Source: Octopus sinensis
Lineage: Eukaryota
Direction: 5' to 3'
Assembly (NCBI RefSeq): GCF_006345805.1
Contig: NC_043001.1
Coordinates: 19,654,001-19,718,000, forward strand
Length of the DNA stretch: 64,000 bases
Shown: piece by piece, positions 15,570 through 60,356 of the stretch
How positions within the stretch are numbered: the stretch's first letter is position 1
How the letters are laid out: each line of letters starts with the position of its first letter
Notes under the pieces: model-generated
Databases searched by the model: none
What the model saw: the letters and a program-made list of their open reading frames with translations, nothing else
Told to the model about the DNA's origin: nothing
Translations under genes and position numbers: made by a program

Positions 15570-18240
15570 TTATCATAATTATTATTCATGGTGTGCATGA
15601 ATGCCATACATTCGGAATCAATGTCCTTGATGCCGGGTCACAACCACTTTCCTTAGATTTCGGGAACCCTTCTTACAATCCTTGCTATTTCAAATAGAGC
15701 AGATTTCCAAAATCAACGCAACTCTTGTAGTTATATCAATCTCAATAAGGCAGTTGTTAAGTCTGTTGCTGACGGTACCTAAAGGCACCTACAGCAACTG
15801 ATGATTACTTTTGTAGAAACCCTCCACTGTCGCAAGAGTGGCTGTGTGGTAAGTAGCTTGCTTACCAACCACATGGTTCCGGGTTCAGTCCCACTGCGTG
15901 GCACCTTGGGCAAGTGTCTTCTACTATAGCCCCGGGCCGACTAAAGCCTTGTGAGTGGATTTGGTAGACAGAAACTGAAAAAAGCCTGTCGTATATATGT
16001 ATATATATATATGTGTGTGTGTGTGTGTATGTGTGTGTATGTTTGTGTGTCTGTGTTTGTCCCCCTCGACATCGTTTGACAACCGATGCAGGTGTGTTTA
16101 CGTCCCCGTAACTTAGAGGTTCGGCAAAAAGAGACCGATAGAATAAGTAGTAGGCTTACAACGAATAAGTCCTGGGGTCGATTTGCTCGACTAAAGGCGG
16201 TGCTCCAGCATGGCCGCAGTCAAATATGACTGAAACAAGTAAAAGAGTTATCATATTTCCTTAAGCCAAATTCTGGTATTTTTCTATTTTTTCTTGTTCT
16301 TTGATGATAGATTCATGTCTGTAGATATAGGCATATTTATGATGGTGCATTCTTTTCACCCTTGCCATGAACCATAATATCTGGTCCTCTGGCATTTATT
16401 TCGCGATCATACTGTGCATTAATACCCAACAAAGGACTACAGAAACTTATTATATGCATGACAGATCCCTGTTTCTCGTTACATACTCTGCACTTTGCAC
16501 TTTCCGCGGATTTGTCTATTATGGCCTTAATGATATTCGTCCACAACGACTGCCTTTGAGCGGCCATTATAATCTGTATGCTTCTTACGGTCTCCCTTCT
16601 TCAGCCATAGCCAAGACTCCTTTGCTGCGACGTCCTGTGTCTGTCTAGCATGCTGGCCGTGTTGTTCTTTTCCCCAGATGTTTCTTTCTCGCTCCTGCTT
16701 TCTTTCCGTGTATTCCGTTGCCATCTCCATGTCTTCTGCCTCCTCTCCTCTCACAGCTGAAATCGGTCTTTCTTGATTGCTTCATACATACTCTTCTATG
16801 TTTTGTTTTGCCATCTCTACACAGTTTTCCATTGATATCAGACCTCTCCCACCTACTTCTGTGATAGACATAATCTATCGACCCTGCCTATGAGTTATAA
16901 CGACCGGTATATGGACTGTGCCTACCTGGTTTTACAATCTGTTTCTTGATTCTTCTGTAGCGGGAGAAATTGATTTGTAAACAATATTATGAAATGTCGG
17001 AGTCAACAGTTGTAACGATAAAAATTTGTTGCTATAACGGCAAGTTGTAAGATGTGGAAGATGGACAATACATGAAGTTTTAAGGAAATATTTTTTTACC
17101 GTTACGTTACAATACCTTGCCTCGACGGGCAGGTTATGATAAATCCAAAAGCATGCGAAGTAAAGTTTGTGTTTGGGTCCTCTTCATTGTTTAGTAGTAA
17201 TTACAGAGAGAGATAGAATGTTGTAAGAGAACAAAATTAGAGCTAGTGAGAGTTGTAGGGTGTGGGACGTTGTCTCATAGTTGCTGACAGTAAACTTCAT
17301 TTCTCCCTCTGACCAAGGTTCTAGCTGGTCAGCCAGACTTCGTTGTCACCGAAGTGATTAACTGGTTGAGTCGTCACCATGTGGCTGAACTCGTTGAGTA
17401 GTCACCGACTGATTTTTGCTTGGGGTGTTCTTGCTTTTATGATATCATTGAGAACAATAGATTTAGTTGGTGATCTTGTTATCTCTATTCTAGCTTTTGG
17501 TGAAGTAGAAGAGGTTAGAAAGGGTCAAGTGGTGAAGACATTATTTCGGCCTAGCTAGAGGCATCTGGAAAATGCAAAACTGCTGTCACAGAAAAACCAT
17601 TGATCCACCGTGGGAAAAGTTCTGTTGCTGTGTTAATCTAAATTTGGCTATGGTGGATCGAATCCACTTCATACTTGCAAGATCCACTACACTTCTTTAG
17701 TCCAGTTCAGGAAATTATCAGAATATCTTATTAGAGAGACCAACCATGCGTTTACTGCAGAGATGTTTTTCCTTCTAATTAATTTTGAGCTTAGCACTCT
17801 TTTCACTCTCCTGAGATATTCGGTTACCACCTCTTTCATTTCTTGGCAGAGAGTGTTATCTGCCTCCAATACACCTAAGTACTTGTAACGGTCACCCTCA
17901 TTCCCTTTAATCCTTTCTGACTTGGAATATATTTCCTCTCTCTTTATCGCTAGCATCGCACAATTATCTGTTCCAAACTCCATACTAATATCACCATTCA
18001 CAGCTCGAACAGTCTGTAGCAGTGAATCTAAAGCTTTCTCACTTTTGGCAAATAATTTCAGGTCGTCCATAAACAAGAGGTGGTTTATTTTCTCCTCACT
18101 GCTAAATTCGTAGCATGATTTAACCTTGCTCAGGGTCAATGTAAGAAGGATAAGGGCAAACACGAATAGCAGTGGTGAGAGTTTATCACCTTGGAATATT
18201 CCCCTACTTACGTTGACTCTACCGAGCTTATCTTGGCCTG
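15570..18240 (-). mobile_element. Fragmented, 5'-truncated R4/Dong-like non-LTR retrotransposon (RT + CCHC + restriction-like endonuclease), interrupted by later insertions
   Basis: 17687-18240 encodes GIFQGDKLSPLLF, HLLFMDDLKLF and YKYLGVLEA. ~16780-16960 is a degenerate DRLY..GGRGL region. 16337-16754 encodes HGQ, SWLWLKKG, AAQ, CRVC..H..C and PDI. ~15660-15810 is a GALGTV..KSALFEIARIVRRV-like C-terminus. TAA-like tail near 15570. Confidence 0.8.
17011..17590. mobile_element. Possible solo LTR inserted in the R4-like relic
   Basis: 580 bp bounded by TGTAAC...GTCACA and lying between two collinear R4 ORF segments; no TSD found. Confidence 0.3.
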
Positions 18241-18271
18241 ATGTTAGTACAGCTCTCCATTTTGGCACACT

Positions 18272-18302
<31 letters not shown>

Positions 18303-18303
<1 letters not shown>

Positions 18304-19270
18304 TAAGGCAGCGAGCTGGCAGAATCGTTAAGATGCCGGGCAAAACGCTTAGCAGTATTTCGTCTGTCTTAACGTTCTGAGTTCAAATTCTGCCGAGGTC
18401 GACTTTGTCTTTCGTCCTTTCAGAGTCGATAAATTAAGTACCAGTTGTGTACTGGGGTCGATCTAATCGACTGGTCCCCTCCCCCAAAATTTCAGGCCTT
18501 GTGCCTATAATGGAAAGGATTATTATTATCATTAAGGCGGCGAGCTGGCAGAAACGTCAGCACGCCGGGGAAAATGCTTAGCAGAATTTTGCCCGTCTTT
18601 ACGTTCTGAGTTCAAATTCCGCCGAGGCCGACTCAGCCTTTCATCCTTTCGGGGTCGATAAATAAAGTACCAGTTACGCATTGGCGTCGATGTAATCGAT
18701 TTAATCCCCTTGTCTGTCCTTGTTTGTCCCCTCTACGTTTAGCCCCTTGTGGGCAATAAAGAAATAAGAAGGCGGCGAACTGGCAGAAACGTTAGCACGC
18801 CGAGCGAAGTGCGTAGCCGTATTTCGTCTGCCGTTTCGTTCTGAGTTCAAATTCCGCCGAGGTCGACTTTGCCTTTCATCCTTTCGGGGTCGATAAATTA
18901 AGTGCCAGTTATGCAATGGTGTTGATGTAATCGACATGATCCCTTTATCTGTCCTTGTTTGTCCCTCTATTTTTAGCCCCTTGTGGGCAATAAAGAAATA
19001 AGAAGTTGCCTTCCCAACCACATGGTTCCGGGTTGTAGTGGGCAAGCGTTCTTTGCTATAGCCTCGAGTCGAGCAAAGCCTTGTGAATGGATTTGGTAGA
19101 CGGAAATGGAAAGAAACCCGTCGTATACACATATATATATATATAAGTATTTGTGTGTCTGTGCTTGTCCTCTCACCATCGCTTGACAACCGATGTCGGT
19201 GTGTTTACGTCTCCGTGACTTAGCGGTTCGGCAAAAGAGACCGATAGAATAAGTACCAGGCTTACAAAGG
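18303..19270 (+). mobile_element. Chain of three family-B SINEs followed by a family-A SINE
   Basis: Heads aaggc(a/g)gcga(g/a)ctggcag at ~18304, ~18535 and ~18769; the family-A body starts at ~19003 directly after an A-rich tail. Confidence 0.8.
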
Positions 19271-19640: not shown

Positions 19641-20519
19641 TTGTCATATAAATAAATACACGTTCATACAAACACAAAGTTTATCACACAAAAAGGAAAC
19701 AGGACAGAACTATGAATCCATGCACAATAAAATTACATTTTAAATGTATCATGCTTGCATAATTTCATTTCCCAGCTTTCACGCGTTGTCTGCAGCAAAT
19801 AGCCACGTCATTTAACCTCAATGTCTCCCGGAGACAGAATCGCTGCAGAATTAATAGCGCTCTGAACTTTTCCACCTGTTCTTTCTCTTGCTATTGTTTT
19901 CGGTGGGACCTTCACAGCTAATTAAATCACTTAGACGGATCTTTAGTTACAAAAAATTATTTTTTTAAATCTGTACGTCAACAGGTAAAGATCCTATTTA
20001 GACATCAGAAGTTATCAATTGCTTTCTGAAGAACCTTCCACACGTTCGGAAATTTTTTTCCATGTATTTGAGAAAGTCTGTTTCCCAAGTTCTTACAATT
20101 TGTTGCTTCTAGTCTTCTTGTACACGAGCAGTTGTAGAAACTATTGTGATTTTCCAGTTTTAAATACGGGATTACCCGTTGTAAACGTTGAGTATGTAGG
20201 TCACCGAAAGTAAACGTTATTGAACAAGGTGTCTCCAATATAGACGACTGTGAAGGTGGATGAAGTCGTCAATGTGAACAATTGTATCGATTAAATTGAA
20301 GGAAAATTAAAAAAAAAGTTGTATTTCATTATACATAAAAATGTTTATTTACAAACGTTTATAAAATTTCATAATTAAGTCAAGTGATCCAAATCTGTAT
20401 ACGTATTTAACAGCATATATAAAAAATGCTTGATTGCTAAAAAGCATTTGTAAGCTTCTGTGACCGCGTTGAAATGGCTAGTGAAAAAATATTTGTGCGT
20501 GTGACAAATTGCGGGCCTG

Positions 20520-20597
20520 GTGGTGGTGGTGGTAGTAGTAGTAGTAGTGGTGGTGGTGGTGGTGGTGGTAGTAGTAGTGGTGGTGGTGGTGGTGGTG

Positions 20598-20633
<36 letters not shown>

Positions 20634-20642
20634 GTAATAGCC

Positions 20643-20679
<37 letters not shown>

Positions 20680-20731
20680 TAGTAGTAGTGGCAGCAGCAG
20701 TAGTAGTAGTAGTAGTGGCAACAGCAGCAGC

Positions 20732-20763
<32 letters not shown>

Positions 20764-20790
20764 CAGCAGCAGCAGCAGTAGTAGTAGTAG

Positions 20791-20836
<46 letters not shown>

Positions 20837-20876
20837 GGCAGCAGTAGTAGTAGTTGTAGTAGTAGTAGTAGTAGTG

Positions 20877-20934
<58 letters not shown>

Positions 20935-20936
20935 CG

Positions 20937-20970
<34 letters not shown>

Positions 20971-20995
20971 TAGCAGCAGCAGTAGTAGTAGTTGC
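20520..20995. repeat. Compound trinucleotide microsatellite (GGT)n/(AGT)n/(AGC)n
   Basis: Directly visible; it produces the spurious poly-T/V/S/L ORFs. Confidence 0.95.
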
Positions 20996-21480
20996 TGTTT
21001 TGGTGGTGCTGAAGTGAGACGATGGTTGGTACTCTCGCATTGTAAAGGTGATGGTGGTGAGGAATTTAGCCCCCACTAAACTGTGATCTTCTCTGTTGCT
21101 GTACCAGTTGAGAAGTAGGACGCAGCTGCCTAGACAAACCTTTTCCTGTCCTGATTGTTAAGTGGTCGAGTTATGAGACAGAGGTCGTGAAAGGTCGAAC
21201 TGAACTGTTTCAACTTGTTGGAAGGTACACACAAGATAATTCATTTCCTTGCTCCTAATGTAGATAAATGTAATTAAAACAAACATCAACGGCGAAACCA
21301 ACCAAGGGTCTACTAAACAATTCGAAGCATTAGTATATCAGATCTTGGCTAGGTTTCTTGATACAAAGTCCTTTTATGCGCCCCTATTTTACGTTGGATA
21401 TACTGTATGAAATTTCCGTCAGCTTCTTCGCTGTATGTTGAGCAAAGTTACTTCGTTTGTGTTAGTAGAGTTCAGACTTT

Positions 21481-31823: not shown

Positions 31824-33452
31824 TCAAAAGTGTCGTGTAACGGCATTCATCAAACAATACGTGTGATCAGACATCATGTTTGCATTCCAATTGTGTGAGC
31901 AAATAAAATCATCTTCTTCTAGGCAGTATGTATGATCTGTACCTTTTCCATCGGGTTCTTTTTGGAGCTTAGCATCAAAACAATATGTATGATCAAAGGA
32001 AGGCTGATTTTCTTTTGCAGCTTGAAGTGTAAAGCTTAGTTTCTCCCAGTCTGTTTTAACTGACCTATTACCAAATGTTTTCAAATTATTCATATTAGAA
32101 ATTATGCCTTTTTTATGAGAATATGTGTGGTCGGGTTTAGAAATATTTGAACAATGTACTGTGGTTTCAACTGGTTGATCAAGGCAATTGTTTTTACTTG
32201 ACTTTTTCAGAGGTGTACTCACTGGTTGAGAGTTTTGGTTATGCTGAGTATTCAGAGGTATGGGTCTCCCAGAATTACTGCAGTTATCTGTATGAGAAGA
32301 ATGGTGTACAAGCTGCAAAGACGAATCCTCTTGAGCGTTTGTCTTTTTTTCGCTACAATGAACTCCAATACTGTACGTATGGTCAGGTTTCAATTTCCTT
32401 GCATTTTTCTCAGGCACAAGTTCACTGTTACAAGCTGAAGGTTCTAATGGTAACTTATCACCAAGCATGTTAGTGCTACAACCTGAGCTGTACGTGTGAT
32501 CAGACTCGATATTGGGCTTGTTAGAATCAGATTGATTCACCGACGGTTCTTGACTGGAATGTGAAGATTTTACTTTCCTTTTACAAAGGCGAGATTTTTT
32601 AGCATGTGACCAATATGTATGATCAGGTTGTAACTGATTTTTCTCAATGCTATTCGAATGGCACTTACTTTTGTTGCCAAATGCAAGTGGGTTCGTTTCG
32701 TTCCCATCATTCAACTCCTGGCTGGCATTGAAACAATAAGTATGATCGGGTTTATACTGTTGATCAAAACTACAGTTACCTTTGGGCGATGCTGACTGTT
32801 CATCAATATGTTTTGTACCTGAGCAGCTTCTTCCACCTTCACTCGAAGGAACAGCTTTCAACGAACAGCTTGACTTTTGTTGATCAGAATTTTGTTTTGT
32901 GTGCAGTTCAATATGTTTGATAAGTTCATTTGATTTTGTAAATATTTTTTTACAATATCCACATTTAAAAGGATTCTTCGTCATGTGGCTTCCTGAATGA
33001 TTTCCTAAATGCGTACCTAAGTTACTTGATGATGTAAAAGACTTTTCACAAAGGTTACATTGGAACAATTTCTCATCAGAATGTACCCTCATGTGTCTGC
33101 TTAGGTTGCTATTATGTGCAAAAAGTTTTTGACAAAAAGTGCATTCATATAAGAAATGTATCTTTAAATTCTTTGAAAGACCTTTGGAATAAAAAAATGG
33201 CTTCAAAAAACATTTTTTACCAGAATTTTCTGTGTTATGGTTTTTAAAATATTTATTTAAATGGCTCTGAAAGGGGAAATTTTTTTTGTGGTAATCAAAC
33301 ATTATAGGTCTTCCAATATTGCTTTTAGGTAAAGGTTTCTTAGAGTTCGTTACACCAGTAGATTTTCCTTCACAATTCATTATGTGGGTTAAAGCTTGTT
33401 TAAAACATTTTATATTTGATGAGTCTTTGTTACTTTCATTTTTTAAGCGCAA
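31824..33452 (-). CDS. C2H2 zinc-finger protein (3 intact fingers plus degenerate ones) with eight C-terminal DHTY motifs; single coding exon
   Basis: 542-codon ORF with fingers CTFC..HMRVH, CNLC..HLGNH and CGYC..HIELH. The listed start is TTG; the first in-frame ATG is at 33380. Acceptor tttatatttttcag (AG 33542-33541); AATAAA on the minus strand at 31682-31677. Confidence 0.9.
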   Translation of the reverse strand: MRLKNESNKDSSNIKCFKQALTHIMNCEGKSTGVTNSKKPLPKSNIGRPIMFDYHKKNFPFQSHLNKYFKNHNTENSGKKCFLKPFFYSKGLSKNLKIHFLYECTFCQKLFAHNSNLSRHMRVHSDEKLFQCNLCEKSFTSSSNLGTHLGNHSGSHMTKNPFKCGYCKKIFTKSNELIKHIELHTKQNSDQQKSSCSLKAVPSSEGGRSCSGTKHIDEQSASPKGNCSFDQQYKPDHTYCFNASQELNDGNETNPLAFGNKSKCHSNSIEKNQLQPDHTYWSHAKKSRLCKRKVKSSHSSQEPSVNQSDSNKPNIESDHTYSSGCSTNMLGDKLPLEPSACNSELVPEKNARKLKPDHTYSIGVHCSEKKTNAQEDSSLQLVHHSSHTDNCSNSGRPIPLNTQHNQNSQPVSTPLKKSSKNNCLDQPVETTVHCSNISKPDHTYSHKKGIISNMNNLKTFGNRSVKTDWEKLSFTLQAAKENQPSFDHTYCFDAKLQKEPDGKGTDHTYCLEEDDFICSHNWNANMMSDHTYCLMNAVTRHF

Positions 33453-48731: not shown

Positions 48732-49545
48732 CTAAATAAAAATAAAATATTGAGCATCATTGTTTAACATAAAATATAAAGGAAAATAAATCATTAAAGC
48801 TCACATAACTTTGAAATTATAAAAACAAAATAAAATTAACTATTCAATTTTTTTTACCAATATCAATATCTGCTTAAATTTACACTTTCGGTTCTTTCTA
48901 ACATTTGAGATTTGAACTCAGACTGACTTCCTCTCTTAAAAATATGATACAGGTGTAACTATGCTCATTTTAATGATTTTTATTTTTTTTGCTAATAAGT
49001 GCTAGTAGGGTGTTAAGAGCACCATCCAAGCATGATCATTGCCAGAGCAGATATCTGGCCTCCGTGCCGGTGGCACGCAAAAGACACCATTCAAGCGTGA
49101 TCGTTACCAGCATCGCCTTACTGGCACCTGTGCCAGTGGCATGTGTAAAAGATTCAAGCGAGGTCGTTGCCAGTACCGCCTGACTGGCCCTTGTACCGGT
49201 GGCATGGAATAAGCACCCACTACACTCTCAGAGTGGTTGGCATTAGAAAGGGCATCCAGCTGCAGAAACTCTGCCAGATCAAGATTGGAGCCTGGTGCAG
49301 CCATCTGGTTCGCCAGCCCTCAGTCACATTGTCCAACCCATGCTAGCATGGAAAGTGGACGTTAAACAATGATGATGATGATGATGATGATGTTAACTAG
49401 ATATAAGAGGGTTTGGAAACAATATAAGGTTTCTGTAAGATCCAGTCCCCACTGAACACAGGCAGATGTTTATAACAGGTGGAGCAATACAAATGAATAA
49501 CTATAAATGGCCTGAAAGCTTTTTGAGATTTATAAGATTACTTAC

Positions 49546-51101
49546 TTGAATGGTTTTTCCCCAGTGTGGATACGTAGATGTAATTGTAGCATAGCTTTGC
49601 GTGCTGTTGAATGACCACAGTATGAACACACATATGGTTTGATCTTACTGTGGACAGCTTGTACATGTTTACTTAAACACTTCTGATTAGCAAAAGTCCG
49701 TTTACAAATGTCACACTGTTTGGTGGTATACCAACGGTCAGCATCATTTGACTGATGTTCTGCATGGATCATTTGGTGGTTCCTCATCTGACTGAACTGC
49801 TTAAAGCCTTTCCAGCATATATCACATGTATACGGTCTCTGGTCACTATGAATCTCTTTATGAATCAGTAATTTGTGGGTAGTGTCTGTTTTGAACTCAC
49901 AGTTCTCACATGCAAAAAGATCTGTATCAATGGAGTGGCAACGCCAAAGATGCATCCTAAGATGTTTCCAAAGAAGAAATTCAACTGCACACATGTTACA
50001 CTCAAAGAAAGACCTATTTGCATCCTTTTTGTGGCAAGCAATGTGAATCTTTAAACTTTGGTCCTTCTTAAACTTGGCAAAACATCCTTGCAGATTACAC
50101 TTAAGACTGTAGCCTTCTGTAAGAACATTAGTATCTTTGTTCTTTCTTTTCTTTTTACCTAAATAATAATCATCTTTCAGAGCTTTTGGTGGGCGAATTT
50201 TTCTACGACTCCGTCCTTTGCGTGAATACCATTCGCTATTTTCATCTTCCTCCCAGTCCTTGTCTGAAACAGGTGAAGAGGATCTCTGAGGTAATGGGTT
50301 TTTCCGTTTTCTACCTGGCTTTTTTTTGGTAGACACAACTTGTGTTCCAACACTGACTCTATTAACAGGTTCTCCAGGTAACTGATTGTCTTCATTGTGG
50401 GGCAAAATATTGTGGACTTGCACGATATGGGATTTACATTCTTCAATACTGTTAAACCCAATTCTACATTGGCCACACAGAAACAATTCTTTCGTAAGAA
50501 CATCATCCCCTTCAATATTAGGTTCGGAAAAGTCGTCAGAAGCAGCAACAGAAAACTGACTAATTGCTTGTGAATTAATTTCAGATTCATTAACAAAAGT
50601 CAACGAGTCTTCAACTGTTGTTGTAGCTTCCAGAGGAATGTAAGATGGTACAATATTTCCAGTTGATAAGATATCGTTGTGAGTTGGAATCATTTGGGGC
50701 TCGTTTAAAGAACCTTGAGTGAAAATAACTTGTTGATGATTTGAGGCTAACTCTATCAATGACCCTGCATCAGATTTTTCAATCAAAGAAACAGAGTCTA
50801 CATCTGACAATGAAGATGCTTCTTGAGAAACGGCTACAGACTGGGTCTTAGACAGATCAGGTATTGTCTCTTCCTCAACAGTGACATCCCCTGAAGAACT
50901 TTCTGCTTGTTCGATATCAGGCATATTTGAAATCGTACTCAATTTGGAAGGAGTTGTCTTGATATGCACATTACGAACGTGTATGCCAATCTCTTGAGGC
51001 TGGTTGCAGGAGAAATTACAGAATCGGCATTTGTATGTAGTAACAACATCCATGTAATCAGTAAGATTAACATCCGTAAATCTGTCGACTGTTGAAGCCA
51101 T
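49546..51101 (-). CDS. Multi-C2H2 zinc-finger protein, coding exon 1 (fingers 1-8, basic KKKPGRKRK patch); spliced product 817 aa, 11 fingers
   Basis: ATG at 51101; donor AA|GTAAGT (GT 49545-49544); 814-bp intron. Upstream acceptor ttcttgttcatctag (AG 51154-51153) implies a non-coding 5' exon. Confidence 0.92.
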
Positions 51102-58982: not shown

Positions 58983-60356
58983 ATGTCTGAGACATGGGCA
59001 GCAGTTGGAATTGACCAAATGGAAGATTTACCTGTTCATGTAGCAGTAGAAGAACTAATACGCATGATATTCTTAGAACAAAAGCAACAATTTGTAAGGG
59101 ATAAGTTTTCACTTACCCTTGATATAAAATCATGCAACACTGGAAATGATAGCACCCAACAAGAATTGTTTAAAATTAAATTATATTGCATTAGCAGTAT
59201 TTCAGATATTTCTGTGTATCTTAAGGAAGGATTAATCAAAACATTGCAATTCTTAGTAGAAAGAATGCAATCCTTGATTAAAAATGAAAGTCACTTATGT
59301 CAAATTCAAAAGTGTCATTTGAATGACAATCATGCTTTGCAAAGGAATTATTTTTTTATTAAAAATCCTCAAAATAAAACCACTGACTTAAGTGAAATTT
59401 CTCTAAGTATCAACAGAGTCCTTCAAAGTCAAGCTACATGGTATTTGAGAATCTACCAAAATCATGCGCATATGCTGAGTGAATGTAGCAAAATTCTTGA
59501 TTATCTGAAAAAAATAAGAATTTTAAACCCATCAGATGAATTCAAGTTTAAATTAAAAGTATCAGGTATCAAATGCAACCCTGATTTATCTACTAATAAC
59601 TATATTGAACTGTGTAATAAAAGAATACTCATTGGTTTACATCAAAATACTAAAACTGGTAAGACAGATGATATTTCAGGAAAGACTTTCATAGGTACTA
59701 CAACATCTTTAACTATTTCCACCAAAGAAAATATTTTCCGGAATATCTTTACTTTGACTTGTCTTGGTTTTCTTTTCCCTCTTGCAGAAGAAGATGCTGG
59801 AGAAAAACAGCATTTAGTTGAATTTTTCTCCTTTGGTCCCTATGGTGAACCCTTAAAACTTCCACATACAATTTTAAATTTTATTTCATGGGAGAAATAC
59901 AATCTAAAAGCTTTGCTAAATAATTCCTTTGAAAATAGAAACAGTTCTTTACAGCCAGAACAATGTCTTGTTACACAACTAACAAATGGAAATACTTTGA
60001 AATGTCAAAAGTTTTGTATTGTTATTTATATAATATTTGACAATACTGATAAAAGACATGCCATGAGCTTACATGTTCTTGGACATCTACATAACAACTT
60101 GAAGTCTGTTTTTGACACCAATGAAAGAAATGTAAGAATAGCAATAGAAAGTTTCACAGATCTTGTCTTTCGTACAGATACTTCAAATCAGGAAAATACA
60201 AATGAAGACAGTTTTTCAAGTGTTAGTGAATCGATTGCAAACGTTGTTCGAAGATCTACAAATGAAGAATTTCGAGAAAGCTGTTTTCATACCATGAAAT
60301 CTAGTTCAGTACAAGAAATGAAAACTGCAATAGCAAAAAGGTTGAAAAAGCTTTGA
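58983..60356 (+). CDS. TOP6BL: Type II DNA topoisomerase VI subunit B-like protein (TOPOVIBL/DUF4554), intronless CDS
   Basis: 457-aa ORF with an in-frame stop just upstream. Motifs AVEELIRMIF, LYCISS, FSFGPYGEPL, ISWEKYNL and VSESIANVVRRSTNEEFRESCFHTMKSSSVQEMKT are collinear with vertebrate TOP6BL as I recall it (AVxEILRxL, LHCxxT, LYGPSGLPL, IDWKKYHL, SIMSILTGSTRSSFRKMCLQTL). No search was run. Confidence 0.65.
   Translation: MSETWAAVGIDQMEDLPVHVAVEELIRMIFLEQKQQFVRDKFSLTLDIKSCNTGNDSTQQELFKIKLYCISSISDISVYLKEGLIKTLQFLVERMQSLIKNESHLCQIQKCHLNDNHALQRNYFFIKNPQNKTTDLSEISLSINRVLQSQATWYLRIYQNHAHMLSECSKILDYLKKIRILNPSDEFKFKLKVSGIKCNPDLSTNNYIELCNKRILIGLHQNTKTGKTDDISGKTFIGTTTSLTISTKENIFRNIFTLTCLGFLFPLAEEDAGEKQHLVEFFSFGPYGEPLKLPHTILNFISWEKYNLKALLNNSFENRNSSLQPEQCLVTQLTNGNTLKCQKFCIVIYIIFDNTDKRHAMSLHVLGHLHNNLKSVFDTNERNVRIAIESFTDLVFRTDTSNQENTNEDSFSSVSESIANVVRRSTNEEFRESCFHTMKSSSVQEMKTAIAKRLKKL

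Follow-up and report, generated by a model that had tools for sequence, protein, structure and literature searches.

HCF-1 is an essential metazoan co-regulator that is recruited via a four-residue motif, which normally occurs once per protein. To our knowledge, the DNA-binding factors CREB3/LZIP, THAP11 and Krox20/EGR2 carry one such motif each, and our literature search revealed nothing to the contrary. Repeated docking sites are found in other systems: the phosphodegrons of Sic1 constitute an allovalent multi-site ligand of the single beta-propeller pocket of Cdc4 (WD40), and the ZEB proteins are C2H2 factors with multiple CtBP-binding PxDLS sites, present in two or three copies. Here, we analyzed a 64,000-nucleotide stretch of the Octopus sinensis genome (GCF_006345805.1, contig NC_043001.1, positions 19,654,001 to 19,718,000; in the following called the window) and examined a gene for a C2H2 zinc-finger protein with eight copies of the tetrapeptide DHTY in its C-terminal tail (here named the DHTY protein). 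We propose, as the best explanation at present and with modest confidence, that it is a multivalent HCF-recruiting transcription factor. Full-text literature searches yielded no description of DHTY arrays or of proteins with multiple or tandem HCF-binding motifs (HBMs).

Eight DHTY motifs in one open reading frame

A six-frame scan of the 64-kb window revealed eight DHTY tetrapeptides, all in one minus-strand frame and within a single open reading frame (ORF), and none in any other frame. Their positions match exactly those given in an initial annotation of the window. Its counts of four PDHTY (motifs 1, 2, 4, and 5) and four DHTYC (motifs 1, 6, 7, and 8) also agree with ours, as does its observation that the codons vary between the copies (GAT/GAC, CAT/CAC, ACT/ACA/ACG, and TAT/TAC). 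The composition of the protein itself predicts 0.0025 occurrences of DHTY, compared with the eight observed, and 200,000 shuffles of the protein gave at most two.

The C-terminal half contains nine tyrosines, all but one of which belong to a DHTY and have an acidic residue upstream. Such a distribution could also arise if the tyrosines were phosphorylation or modification sites that dock SH2/PTB-type readers and the tail served as a signaling scaffold. We consider this very unlikely, as the residue at Y+3 is inconsistent and no other SH2/PTB signature is seen, the zinc fingers and a basic patch resembling a nuclear localization signal point to the nucleus, and the invariant His and Thr would be left unexplained.

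The start-to-start distances between the octopus motifs are 41, 41, 39, 84, 46, 19, and 23 residues. If the 84-residue gap is taken as two, six intervals are about 40 residues and the last two about 20 residues long; in the distant orthologue P0003 (see below), the spacing is 38 to 52 residues. The quasi-regularity of the first five octopus distances and of those in P0003 would be compatible with motifs that persist as inert relics from an ancient duplication within the protein, without function of their own. Tandem Repeats Finder detected no DNA tandem repeat at the array, and the only direct DNA repeats are 14 to 35 nt long and encode the motif plus its immediate flanks. Smith-Waterman comparison of spacer against spacer gave a mean score of 19.6, which is at the level of shuffled spacers (19.4 ± 0.8) and bears out the earlier statement that the spacers are unrelated and the array is not a DNA repeat. 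This lack of residual similarity between the spacers argues against inert relics, and an internal-repeat origin of the tail was rejected on the same grounds.

Conservation and selection in orthologues

A full-length search of 5.8 billion proteins yielded five full-length relatives, P0001 to P0005, with one gene per species; all other matches were restricted to the fingers. P0001, from an Octopus, shows 92% identity to the window protein, and its cluster also contains O. bimaculoides XP_014781270.1 ("zinc finger protein 184") and an O. vulgaris protein ("finger 429"). P0002 from Argonauta hians ("zinc finger protein 429-like") is 67% identical, and P0003, P0004, and P0005, probably from squid or cuttlefish lineages, are 33 to 37% identical. 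The DHTY protein itself is labeled "zinc finger protein 184/429-like" in databases. The O. vulgaris protein differs from the window protein by one residue, and an identical protein, residue for residue, is encoded on CM016863.1 of GCA_006345805.1.

In the alignment of O. sinensis, the second Octopus (P0001), Argonauta, and P0003 to P0005, all 32 motif columns are identical, and all eight DHTY are likewise present in O. bimaculoides and O. vulgaris. By contrast, spacer identity to the window protein drops from 89% in P0001 to 56% in Argonauta and 17 to 21% in P0003 to P0005; the finger region of the latter three retains 47 to 55%. The comparison of motif with spacer conservation that the initial annotation had proposed as a check thus turned out in its favor. 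A ninth motif is located between motifs 4 and 5 in distant orthologues only (P0003 421-424, P0005 481-484), and its variants are labile (DPDHTY, NPDHIY, and DPGHTY, the last in P0141). Octopods lack it and show an alignment gap near window residues 380 to 385. As judged from the alignment, the ninth motif appears to be decaying, and the other eight never change.

Comparison of the window with the P0001 locus gave a ratio of nonsynonymous to synonymous substitution rates (dN/dS) of 0.11 for the whole gene and 0.117 for the tail, and the motif codons differ synonymously between orthologues (e.g., ACA/ACG and ACG/ACC). The synonymous changes and the low dN/dS therefore indicate selection on the peptide, as previously suggested, which has kept the eight sites unchanged over the deepest divergence in our sample. 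The former description of the C-terminal half as low complexity needs correction: the region is Ser/Asn/Lys-rich and predicted to be disordered, and it is under purifying selection. Four residues perfectly kept at eight sites in every lineage, next to spacers down to 17 to 21% identity, and the synonymous changes within motif codons would not be expected of inert relics. This conservation pattern already effectively refutes that reading, and we assign it next to no probability.

When a profile of the tail was run without word filter on 1.84 billion representative proteins, it matched only two clusters, both of the DHTY family, and we therefore regard the array as a property of one orthologous gene and not as a module of many zinc-finger (ZNF) paralogues. 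The idea that some of the expanded cephalopod C2H2 genes share an effector module is not supported, in view of this result and of the single gene per species in the full-length search. A query of 17 concatenated motif 13-mers gave no match at E values up to 10 and also missed its own family, which makes it uninformative; the failure is probably due to the HMMER correction for repetitive composition. As far as public data show, the DHTY family appears to be limited to coleoid cephalopods.

Near-identical members of the P0003 cluster comprise 565, 563, and 561 amino acids. A poly-Gln run ahead of motif 1 (residues about 190 to 200) is variable in length in P0003, P0136, P0137, and P0141. Contigs of this cluster, 2.2 to 3.1 kb in length, occur in well over 100 sequencing runs and are transcript-like; splicing is not provable from their comparison with the genomic locus L011.

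Fit to the HCF-1-binding motif

Reference data were taken from the preprint of Ord et al. (2026; 10.64898/2026.03.19.712392) and its supplementary tables, in which all 347 human disordered [DE]HxY peptides were assayed against the HCF1 Kelch domain and deep mutational scans were performed. According to this work, the anchors D/E, H, and Y are intolerant to substitution, a small residue is preferred at x, a charged residue at Y+1 and Pro at Y+2 are disallowed, a hydrophobic residue is preferred at H-4, and known HBMs are located in disordered regions. The core [D/E]-H-x-Y is present in all eight octopus motifs and in all orthologues. Disorder of the tail is indicated by its Ser/Asn/Lys-rich composition, with supportive evidence from AlphaFold2 (AF2).

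Flanks were analyzed in 51 motif instances from the six orthologues. Thr occupies the x position in 50 of them, in agreement with the preference for small residues. At Y+1, Cys (31 instances), Ser (14), and Trp (6) are found and a charged residue never; Pro is likewise absent from Y+2 in all 51, and Ser and Gly are enriched after Y+1. According to the published scan tables (Ord et al. 2026), only one residue outperforms Thr at x when DIDO1 is the background, and with KANSL3, Thr does as well as wild type. At Y+1, neither Cys nor Ser falls below wild type, and Trp scores slightly negative, so that the Trp at Y+1 of motif 2 represents a mildly unfavorable residue. Five of the eight octopus motifs have Y, L, I, L, or M at H-4. 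Among assayed human peptides, HHDHTYSL of CREB3 is a measured binder, whereas PDHTYK and PDHTYEP are non-binders (Ord et al. 2026).

Cys and Ser at Y+1 are swapped between lineages, as expected under a rule of small uncharged residues. The frequent Cys after Tyr (31 of 51), a tail content of 3 to 4.5% Cys and 5 to 6% His, and the clustering of the last three motifs and a conserved Cys within about 45 residues would also be in line with H-x-x-C sites at which His and Cys bind metal or act in redox reactions and which would give the tail a fold or serve as metal sensors. A metal ligand would not tolerate Ser or Trp at Y+1. Other lineages have Ser in place of the Cys of a given motif, and motif 2 has an invariant Trp, which makes metal binding unlikely. 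In addition, no structure is predicted in the tail, and the invariance of Asp, Thr, and Tyr would be left unexplained. Overall, we judge metal or redox sites to be improbable.

Additive matrices were built from the two DHxY scan backgrounds, KANSL3 and DIDO1. They provide a rough guide, given a calibration on eight peptides only and the dominance of Trp at H-4 in the DIDO1 matrix. The eight octopus motifs scored -1.2 to +0.5 with the KANSL3 matrix and -3.6 to -7.7 with the DIDO1 matrix. Four peptides treated as binders, of which CREB3 and KANSL3 are confirmed and CREBZF and ICE1 were assigned from enrichment values, reached -0.03 to +0.46 and -2.5 to -3.7, respectively. The corresponding values of four non-binders were about -2.5 to -4, apart from a single one at +0.38, and -6.4 to -14. 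On this eight-peptide calibration, the octopus scores are near those of the binders in the KANSL3 matrix. Position by position, x and Y+1 clearly outscore random flanks from the tail, and H-2 falls behind them. We consider the core and the strictly constrained positions (x, Y+1, and Y+2) compatible with an HBM and expect that a single site would have at best a moderate affinity for human HCF1.

The putative HCF partner

The query in the search for HCF was a human Kelch domain sequence that is 99% identical to a database entry. HCF Kelch domains of a tick, the sea anemone Nematostella, and the leech Helobdella are 74 to 77% identical to the human domain. The pocket residues S202 and R228, mutations of which abolish motif binding by the Kelch domain, are present in each of the 16 metazoan HCFs sampled, which range from ctenophores to vertebrates. 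P134, whose mutation we also take to abolish motif binding, is found in 13 of these 16. An HCF would be expected in octopus as well, since HCF distribution is pan-metazoan. One ENA match to HCF was considered as a cephalopod source and rejected because it consists of TARA plankton contigs.

Arguments for a different reader

Several observations weigh against the recruitment of HCF by the DHTY array. Only 66 of the 347 human [DE]HxY peptides bound HCF1 in vitro (Ord et al. 2026). Pro is located at H-2 in 24 of the 51 motif instances; it is the worst residue at this position in DIDO1 (about -2.2 log2) and amounts to about -0.5 in KANSL3, although the SEC16A peptide QPDHSYN is a natural human HCF1 binder despite Pro at H-2 (Ord et al. 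2026). In the DIDO1 matrix, the octopus scores are intermediate between those of binders and non-binders on the eight-peptide calibration. Whole flanks do not score above random flanks from the tail, of which a fraction of 0.07 to 0.13 (KANSL3) or 0.71 to 0.99 (DIDO1) reaches the real score. Moreover, Asn, Ser, and Thr score alike at x, so the invariance of Thr exceeds the apparent need for HCF. HCF binding alone accounts neither for the conserved Pro nor for the invariant Thr. Among the matches listed for the Kelch query, there was no cephalopod HCF. Finally, the Logan contigs L008 to L010 of the closest relative were rejected as transcripts and are considered genomic, because they are colinear with the window including its non-coding flanks, and thus do not attest expression of the octopus gene.

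Part of this would be explained if the multivalent array were read by something else than HCF, for instance a different beta-propeller, an enzyme that modifies it, or a protein found only in cephalopods, and if the match to [DE]HxY were coincidental. The pattern is tighter than the HBM consensus with respect to the near-invariant Thr, the frequent Pro at H-2, and the Ser/Gly residues past Y+1. The penalty for Pro in the DIDO1 scan, the flank scores at random level, and the high share of non-binders among human peptides point in the same direction, as does the lineage restriction of the DHTY family. On the other hand, our literature search turned up no other D-H-x-Y reader, all strict HCF1 positions agree in the eight motifs of every orthologue, DHTY is the validated motif of CREB3, and the carrier is a DNA-binding protein, a class typical for HBMs. 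We regard a non-HCF reader as doubtful, yet as the main alternative. The initial interpretation is partly supported. Its proposal of a multivalent HCF-1 recruiter is compatible with the determinants at x, Y+1, and Y+2; the Pro at H-2, unfavorable in one of the two scan backgrounds, and the flanks, which are no better than random, do not support it.

Gene structure and protein architecture

The reading frame of the gene (Table 1) is open from 33458, and 33380 is the first ATG. The aligned Met is the start of all orthologues, and an in-frame stop is located 2 to 27 codons upstream of it in four of four loci examined. Most simply, therefore, the gene consists of one exon and encodes no N-terminal effector domain. 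A Pfam scan matched zf-C2H2 in three stretches (E = 1.3e-14) as the sole family in the protein; it revealed no bZIP, no match in the tail, and no THAP domain at E values up to 1. As THAP is not matched and the upstream stops leave no N-terminal room, the DHTY protein is not a THAP protein. Its tandem C-x2-C-x12-H-x3-H fingers are those of the C2H2 (Krueppel-type) class.

Fingers F3 to F5 have recognition helices that are kept across orthologues and contain many invariant alignment columns. AF2 modeled them with beta-beta-alpha elements at a predicted local distance difference test (pLDDT) score of 60 to 81, and they presumably form a sequence-specific DNA-binding module. Finger 1 has lost both Cys ligands in all octopod sequences (IMFDYHKK...) and is intact in P0003 to P0005 at residues about 25 to 48 (FKCDYCKK...H...H); octopods thus have one working finger fewer. 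Tail residues 166 to 518 have a pLDDT below 50 and no predicted secondary structure, a supportive rather than strong indication of disorder, as AF2 was run on a shallow alignment of six rows. A Lys-rich patch is present in every orthologue at the position of KKSRLCKRKVK, which is a candidate nuclear localization signal.

Table 1. Features of the window (coordinates refer to the window, residues to the DHTY protein)
Feature	Coordinates	Strand	Residues	Remarks
Complete single-exon coding sequence	31824-33380	minus	518 aa + stop	ATG at 33380 (MNCEGK...), TGA at 31826-31824
Degenerate finger 1 (IMFDYHKKNF...KNH)	33237-33305	minus	26-48	From alignment
Degenerate finger-like segment 2 (KCFLKPFFYSKGLSKNLKIH)	33156-33215	minus		Non-canonical yet conserved in all orthologues
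Three intact C2H2 fingers	32901-33149	minus		F3 33081-33149, F4 32997-33065, F5 32901-32969
Disordered C-terminal tail, 358 aa	31827-32900	minus	161-518	Ser/Asn/Lys-rich, bears the motif array
Motif 1 (QQYKPDHTYCFN)	32736-32747	minus	212-215	Invariant in all orthologues
Motif 2 (NQLQPDHTYWSH)	32613-32624	minus	253-256	Trp-Ser after Tyr also invariant
Basic patch KKSRLCKRKVK	32568-32600	minus	261-271	After motif 2; K261, K262, and K271 invariant
Motif 3 (PNIESDHTYSSG)	32490-32501	minus	294-297	
Motif 4 (RKLKPDHTYSIG)	32373-32384	minus	333-336	
Motif 5 (NISKPDHTYSHK)	32121-32132	minus	417-420	
Motif 6 (NQPSFDHTYCFD)	31983-31994	minus	463-466	
Motif 7 (DGKGTDHTYCLE)	31926-31937	minus	482-485	
Motif 8 (ANMMSDHTYCLM)	31857-31868	minus	505-508	Within conserved end; top score against HCF1 matrices
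Conserved tail end	31827-31907	minus		...DHTYCL..V.R.F across orthologues
Large ORFs, 308 and 519 aa	47834-48760 and 49542-51101	minus		ZNF462/ZNF142-type Pfam finger matches
457-aa ORF	58983-60356	plus		Pfam DUF4554 (PF15091), E = 2.4e-8, above curated cut-off
218-aa ORF	17687-18343	minus		Partial RVT_1, E = 7.6e-9; poly-Asp run before the domain
Long trinucleotide microsatellite	20375-21079	both		Overlapping poly-Thr/Ala, poly-Ser/Gly, and poly-Val/Ala ORFs in several frames

Other features of the window

The window has a G+C content of 30 to 43%, is eukaryotic, and contains microsatellites and a reverse-transcriptase relic. The two large ORFs with ZNF462/ZNF142-type matches appear to be exons of another C2H2 zinc-finger gene, unrelated to the first; they include a Thr-rich low-complexity stretch and no DHTY array. 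The family DUF4554, matched by the 457-aa ORF, is presumably that of vertebrate C11orf80/TOPOVIBL, a meiotic protein. The ORF with the partial RVT_1 domain is probably a retroelement relic, and the ORFs overlapping the trinucleotide microsatellite are artefacts of this repeat. About 226 bp of the 5' flank of the DHTY gene (33936-33710) are absent from the congeneric genomic contig L008 (254-268), which is otherwise 89% identical to the window, non-coding sequence included.

Proposed mechanism

The motifs, their strict conservation, the selection on the peptide, the predicted disorder, and the fit at x, Y+1, and Y+2 are observed; from these we infer HCF binding and its stoichiometry, nuclear localization, DNA binding, and the transcriptional outcome. 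In the proposed mechanism, the three conserved fingers would place a nuclear protein on specific DNA sites, and the disordered tail of 358 residues would display eight copies of a short linear motif with the consensus (K)-P-D-H-T-Y-[C/S]. Each copy could dock in the one peptide pocket that the Kelch beta-propeller of HCF offers. HCF would thereby be held at these DNA sites and bring along contacts to OGT, histone-modifying activities, and TFIID. As each site looks moderate, the array may work via avidity or rebinding among individually moderate sites; alternatively, several HCF molecules could be clustered on one tail. Neighboring sites could be occupied at the same time where the spacers are about 40 residues long; for the last three sites, which lie some 20 residues from each other, this may not be possible.

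Two more specific scenarios are conceivable, in which the eight sites would be more than redundant docking points for HCF. In the first, the array is tunable and allovalent: phosphate or O-GlcNAc on the invariant Thr, or on the Ser/Cys after Tyr, would set the number of open sites, so that HCF/OGT would be recruited to specific loci in the manner of a switch or by the formation of hubs. In the second, the array is one half of a new, cephalopod-specific motif-reader pair unrelated to HCF. That one or the other applies is a tentative suggestion which we hold possible rather than probable. If true, a modified array or a new motif-reader pair would be an undescribed route from a zinc-finger protein to a co-regulator.

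Should the DHTY protein recruit HCF through its array, it would amount to a natural experiment on how a DNA-binding protein with eight invariant copies of a well-studied motif engages a propeller that has only one pocket. Avidity, stoichiometry, and the formation of hubs could be addressed with it, possibly also binding gated by modification, and for the first time a zinc-finger factor restricted to cephalopods would have a concrete effector mechanism. Even if HCF is not the partner, the conserved tetrapeptides point to an interaction motif under strong selection.

Comparison with known systems

Among known proteins, the DHTY protein most closely resembles factors with a single HBM, namely CREB3/LZIP (with DHTY), THAP11, and Krox20/EGR2, in that the core is located in a disordered part of a DNA-binding protein, and the form of the motif in CREB3, DHTY followed by Ser, is a measured human HCF1 binder. 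Krox20/EGR2, likewise a C2H2 protein, is reported to use HCF-1 as a coactivator, an example of a C2H2 factor that can do so. In contrast to these factors, the octopus protein carries eight invariant copies (nine in some lineages), lacks a bZIP or THAP domain, and often has Pro before Asp.

With the vertebrate KRAB zinc-finger proteins and the expanded cephalopod C2H2 repertoire (PMC12513265), the DHTY gene shares C2H2 fingers and a large coding exon, and it is restricted to cephalopods like the latter. It differs from such expanded sets in being present as one gene per species, with few fingers and no tandem array in the window, and its conserved recognition helices make it unlike a fast-evolving expanded ZNF. 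HCF or effector motifs are not mentioned in the paper on the cephalopod C2H2 expansion (PMC12513265).

A further likeness is to the ZEB proteins, which also combine DNA binding by zinc fingers with repeated docking motifs for one co-regulator; motif and partner are different in octopus, and eight copies compare with two or three. In mechanism, the array is closest to the Sic1-Cdc4 pair, in which many sub-optimal motif copies on a disordered chain engage a propeller with one pocket, and the intermediate scores of the single DHTY sites fit this picture. The likeness would extend to the mechanism only, as the octopus tail shows no evidence of phosphorylation dependence or of degradation as an outcome.

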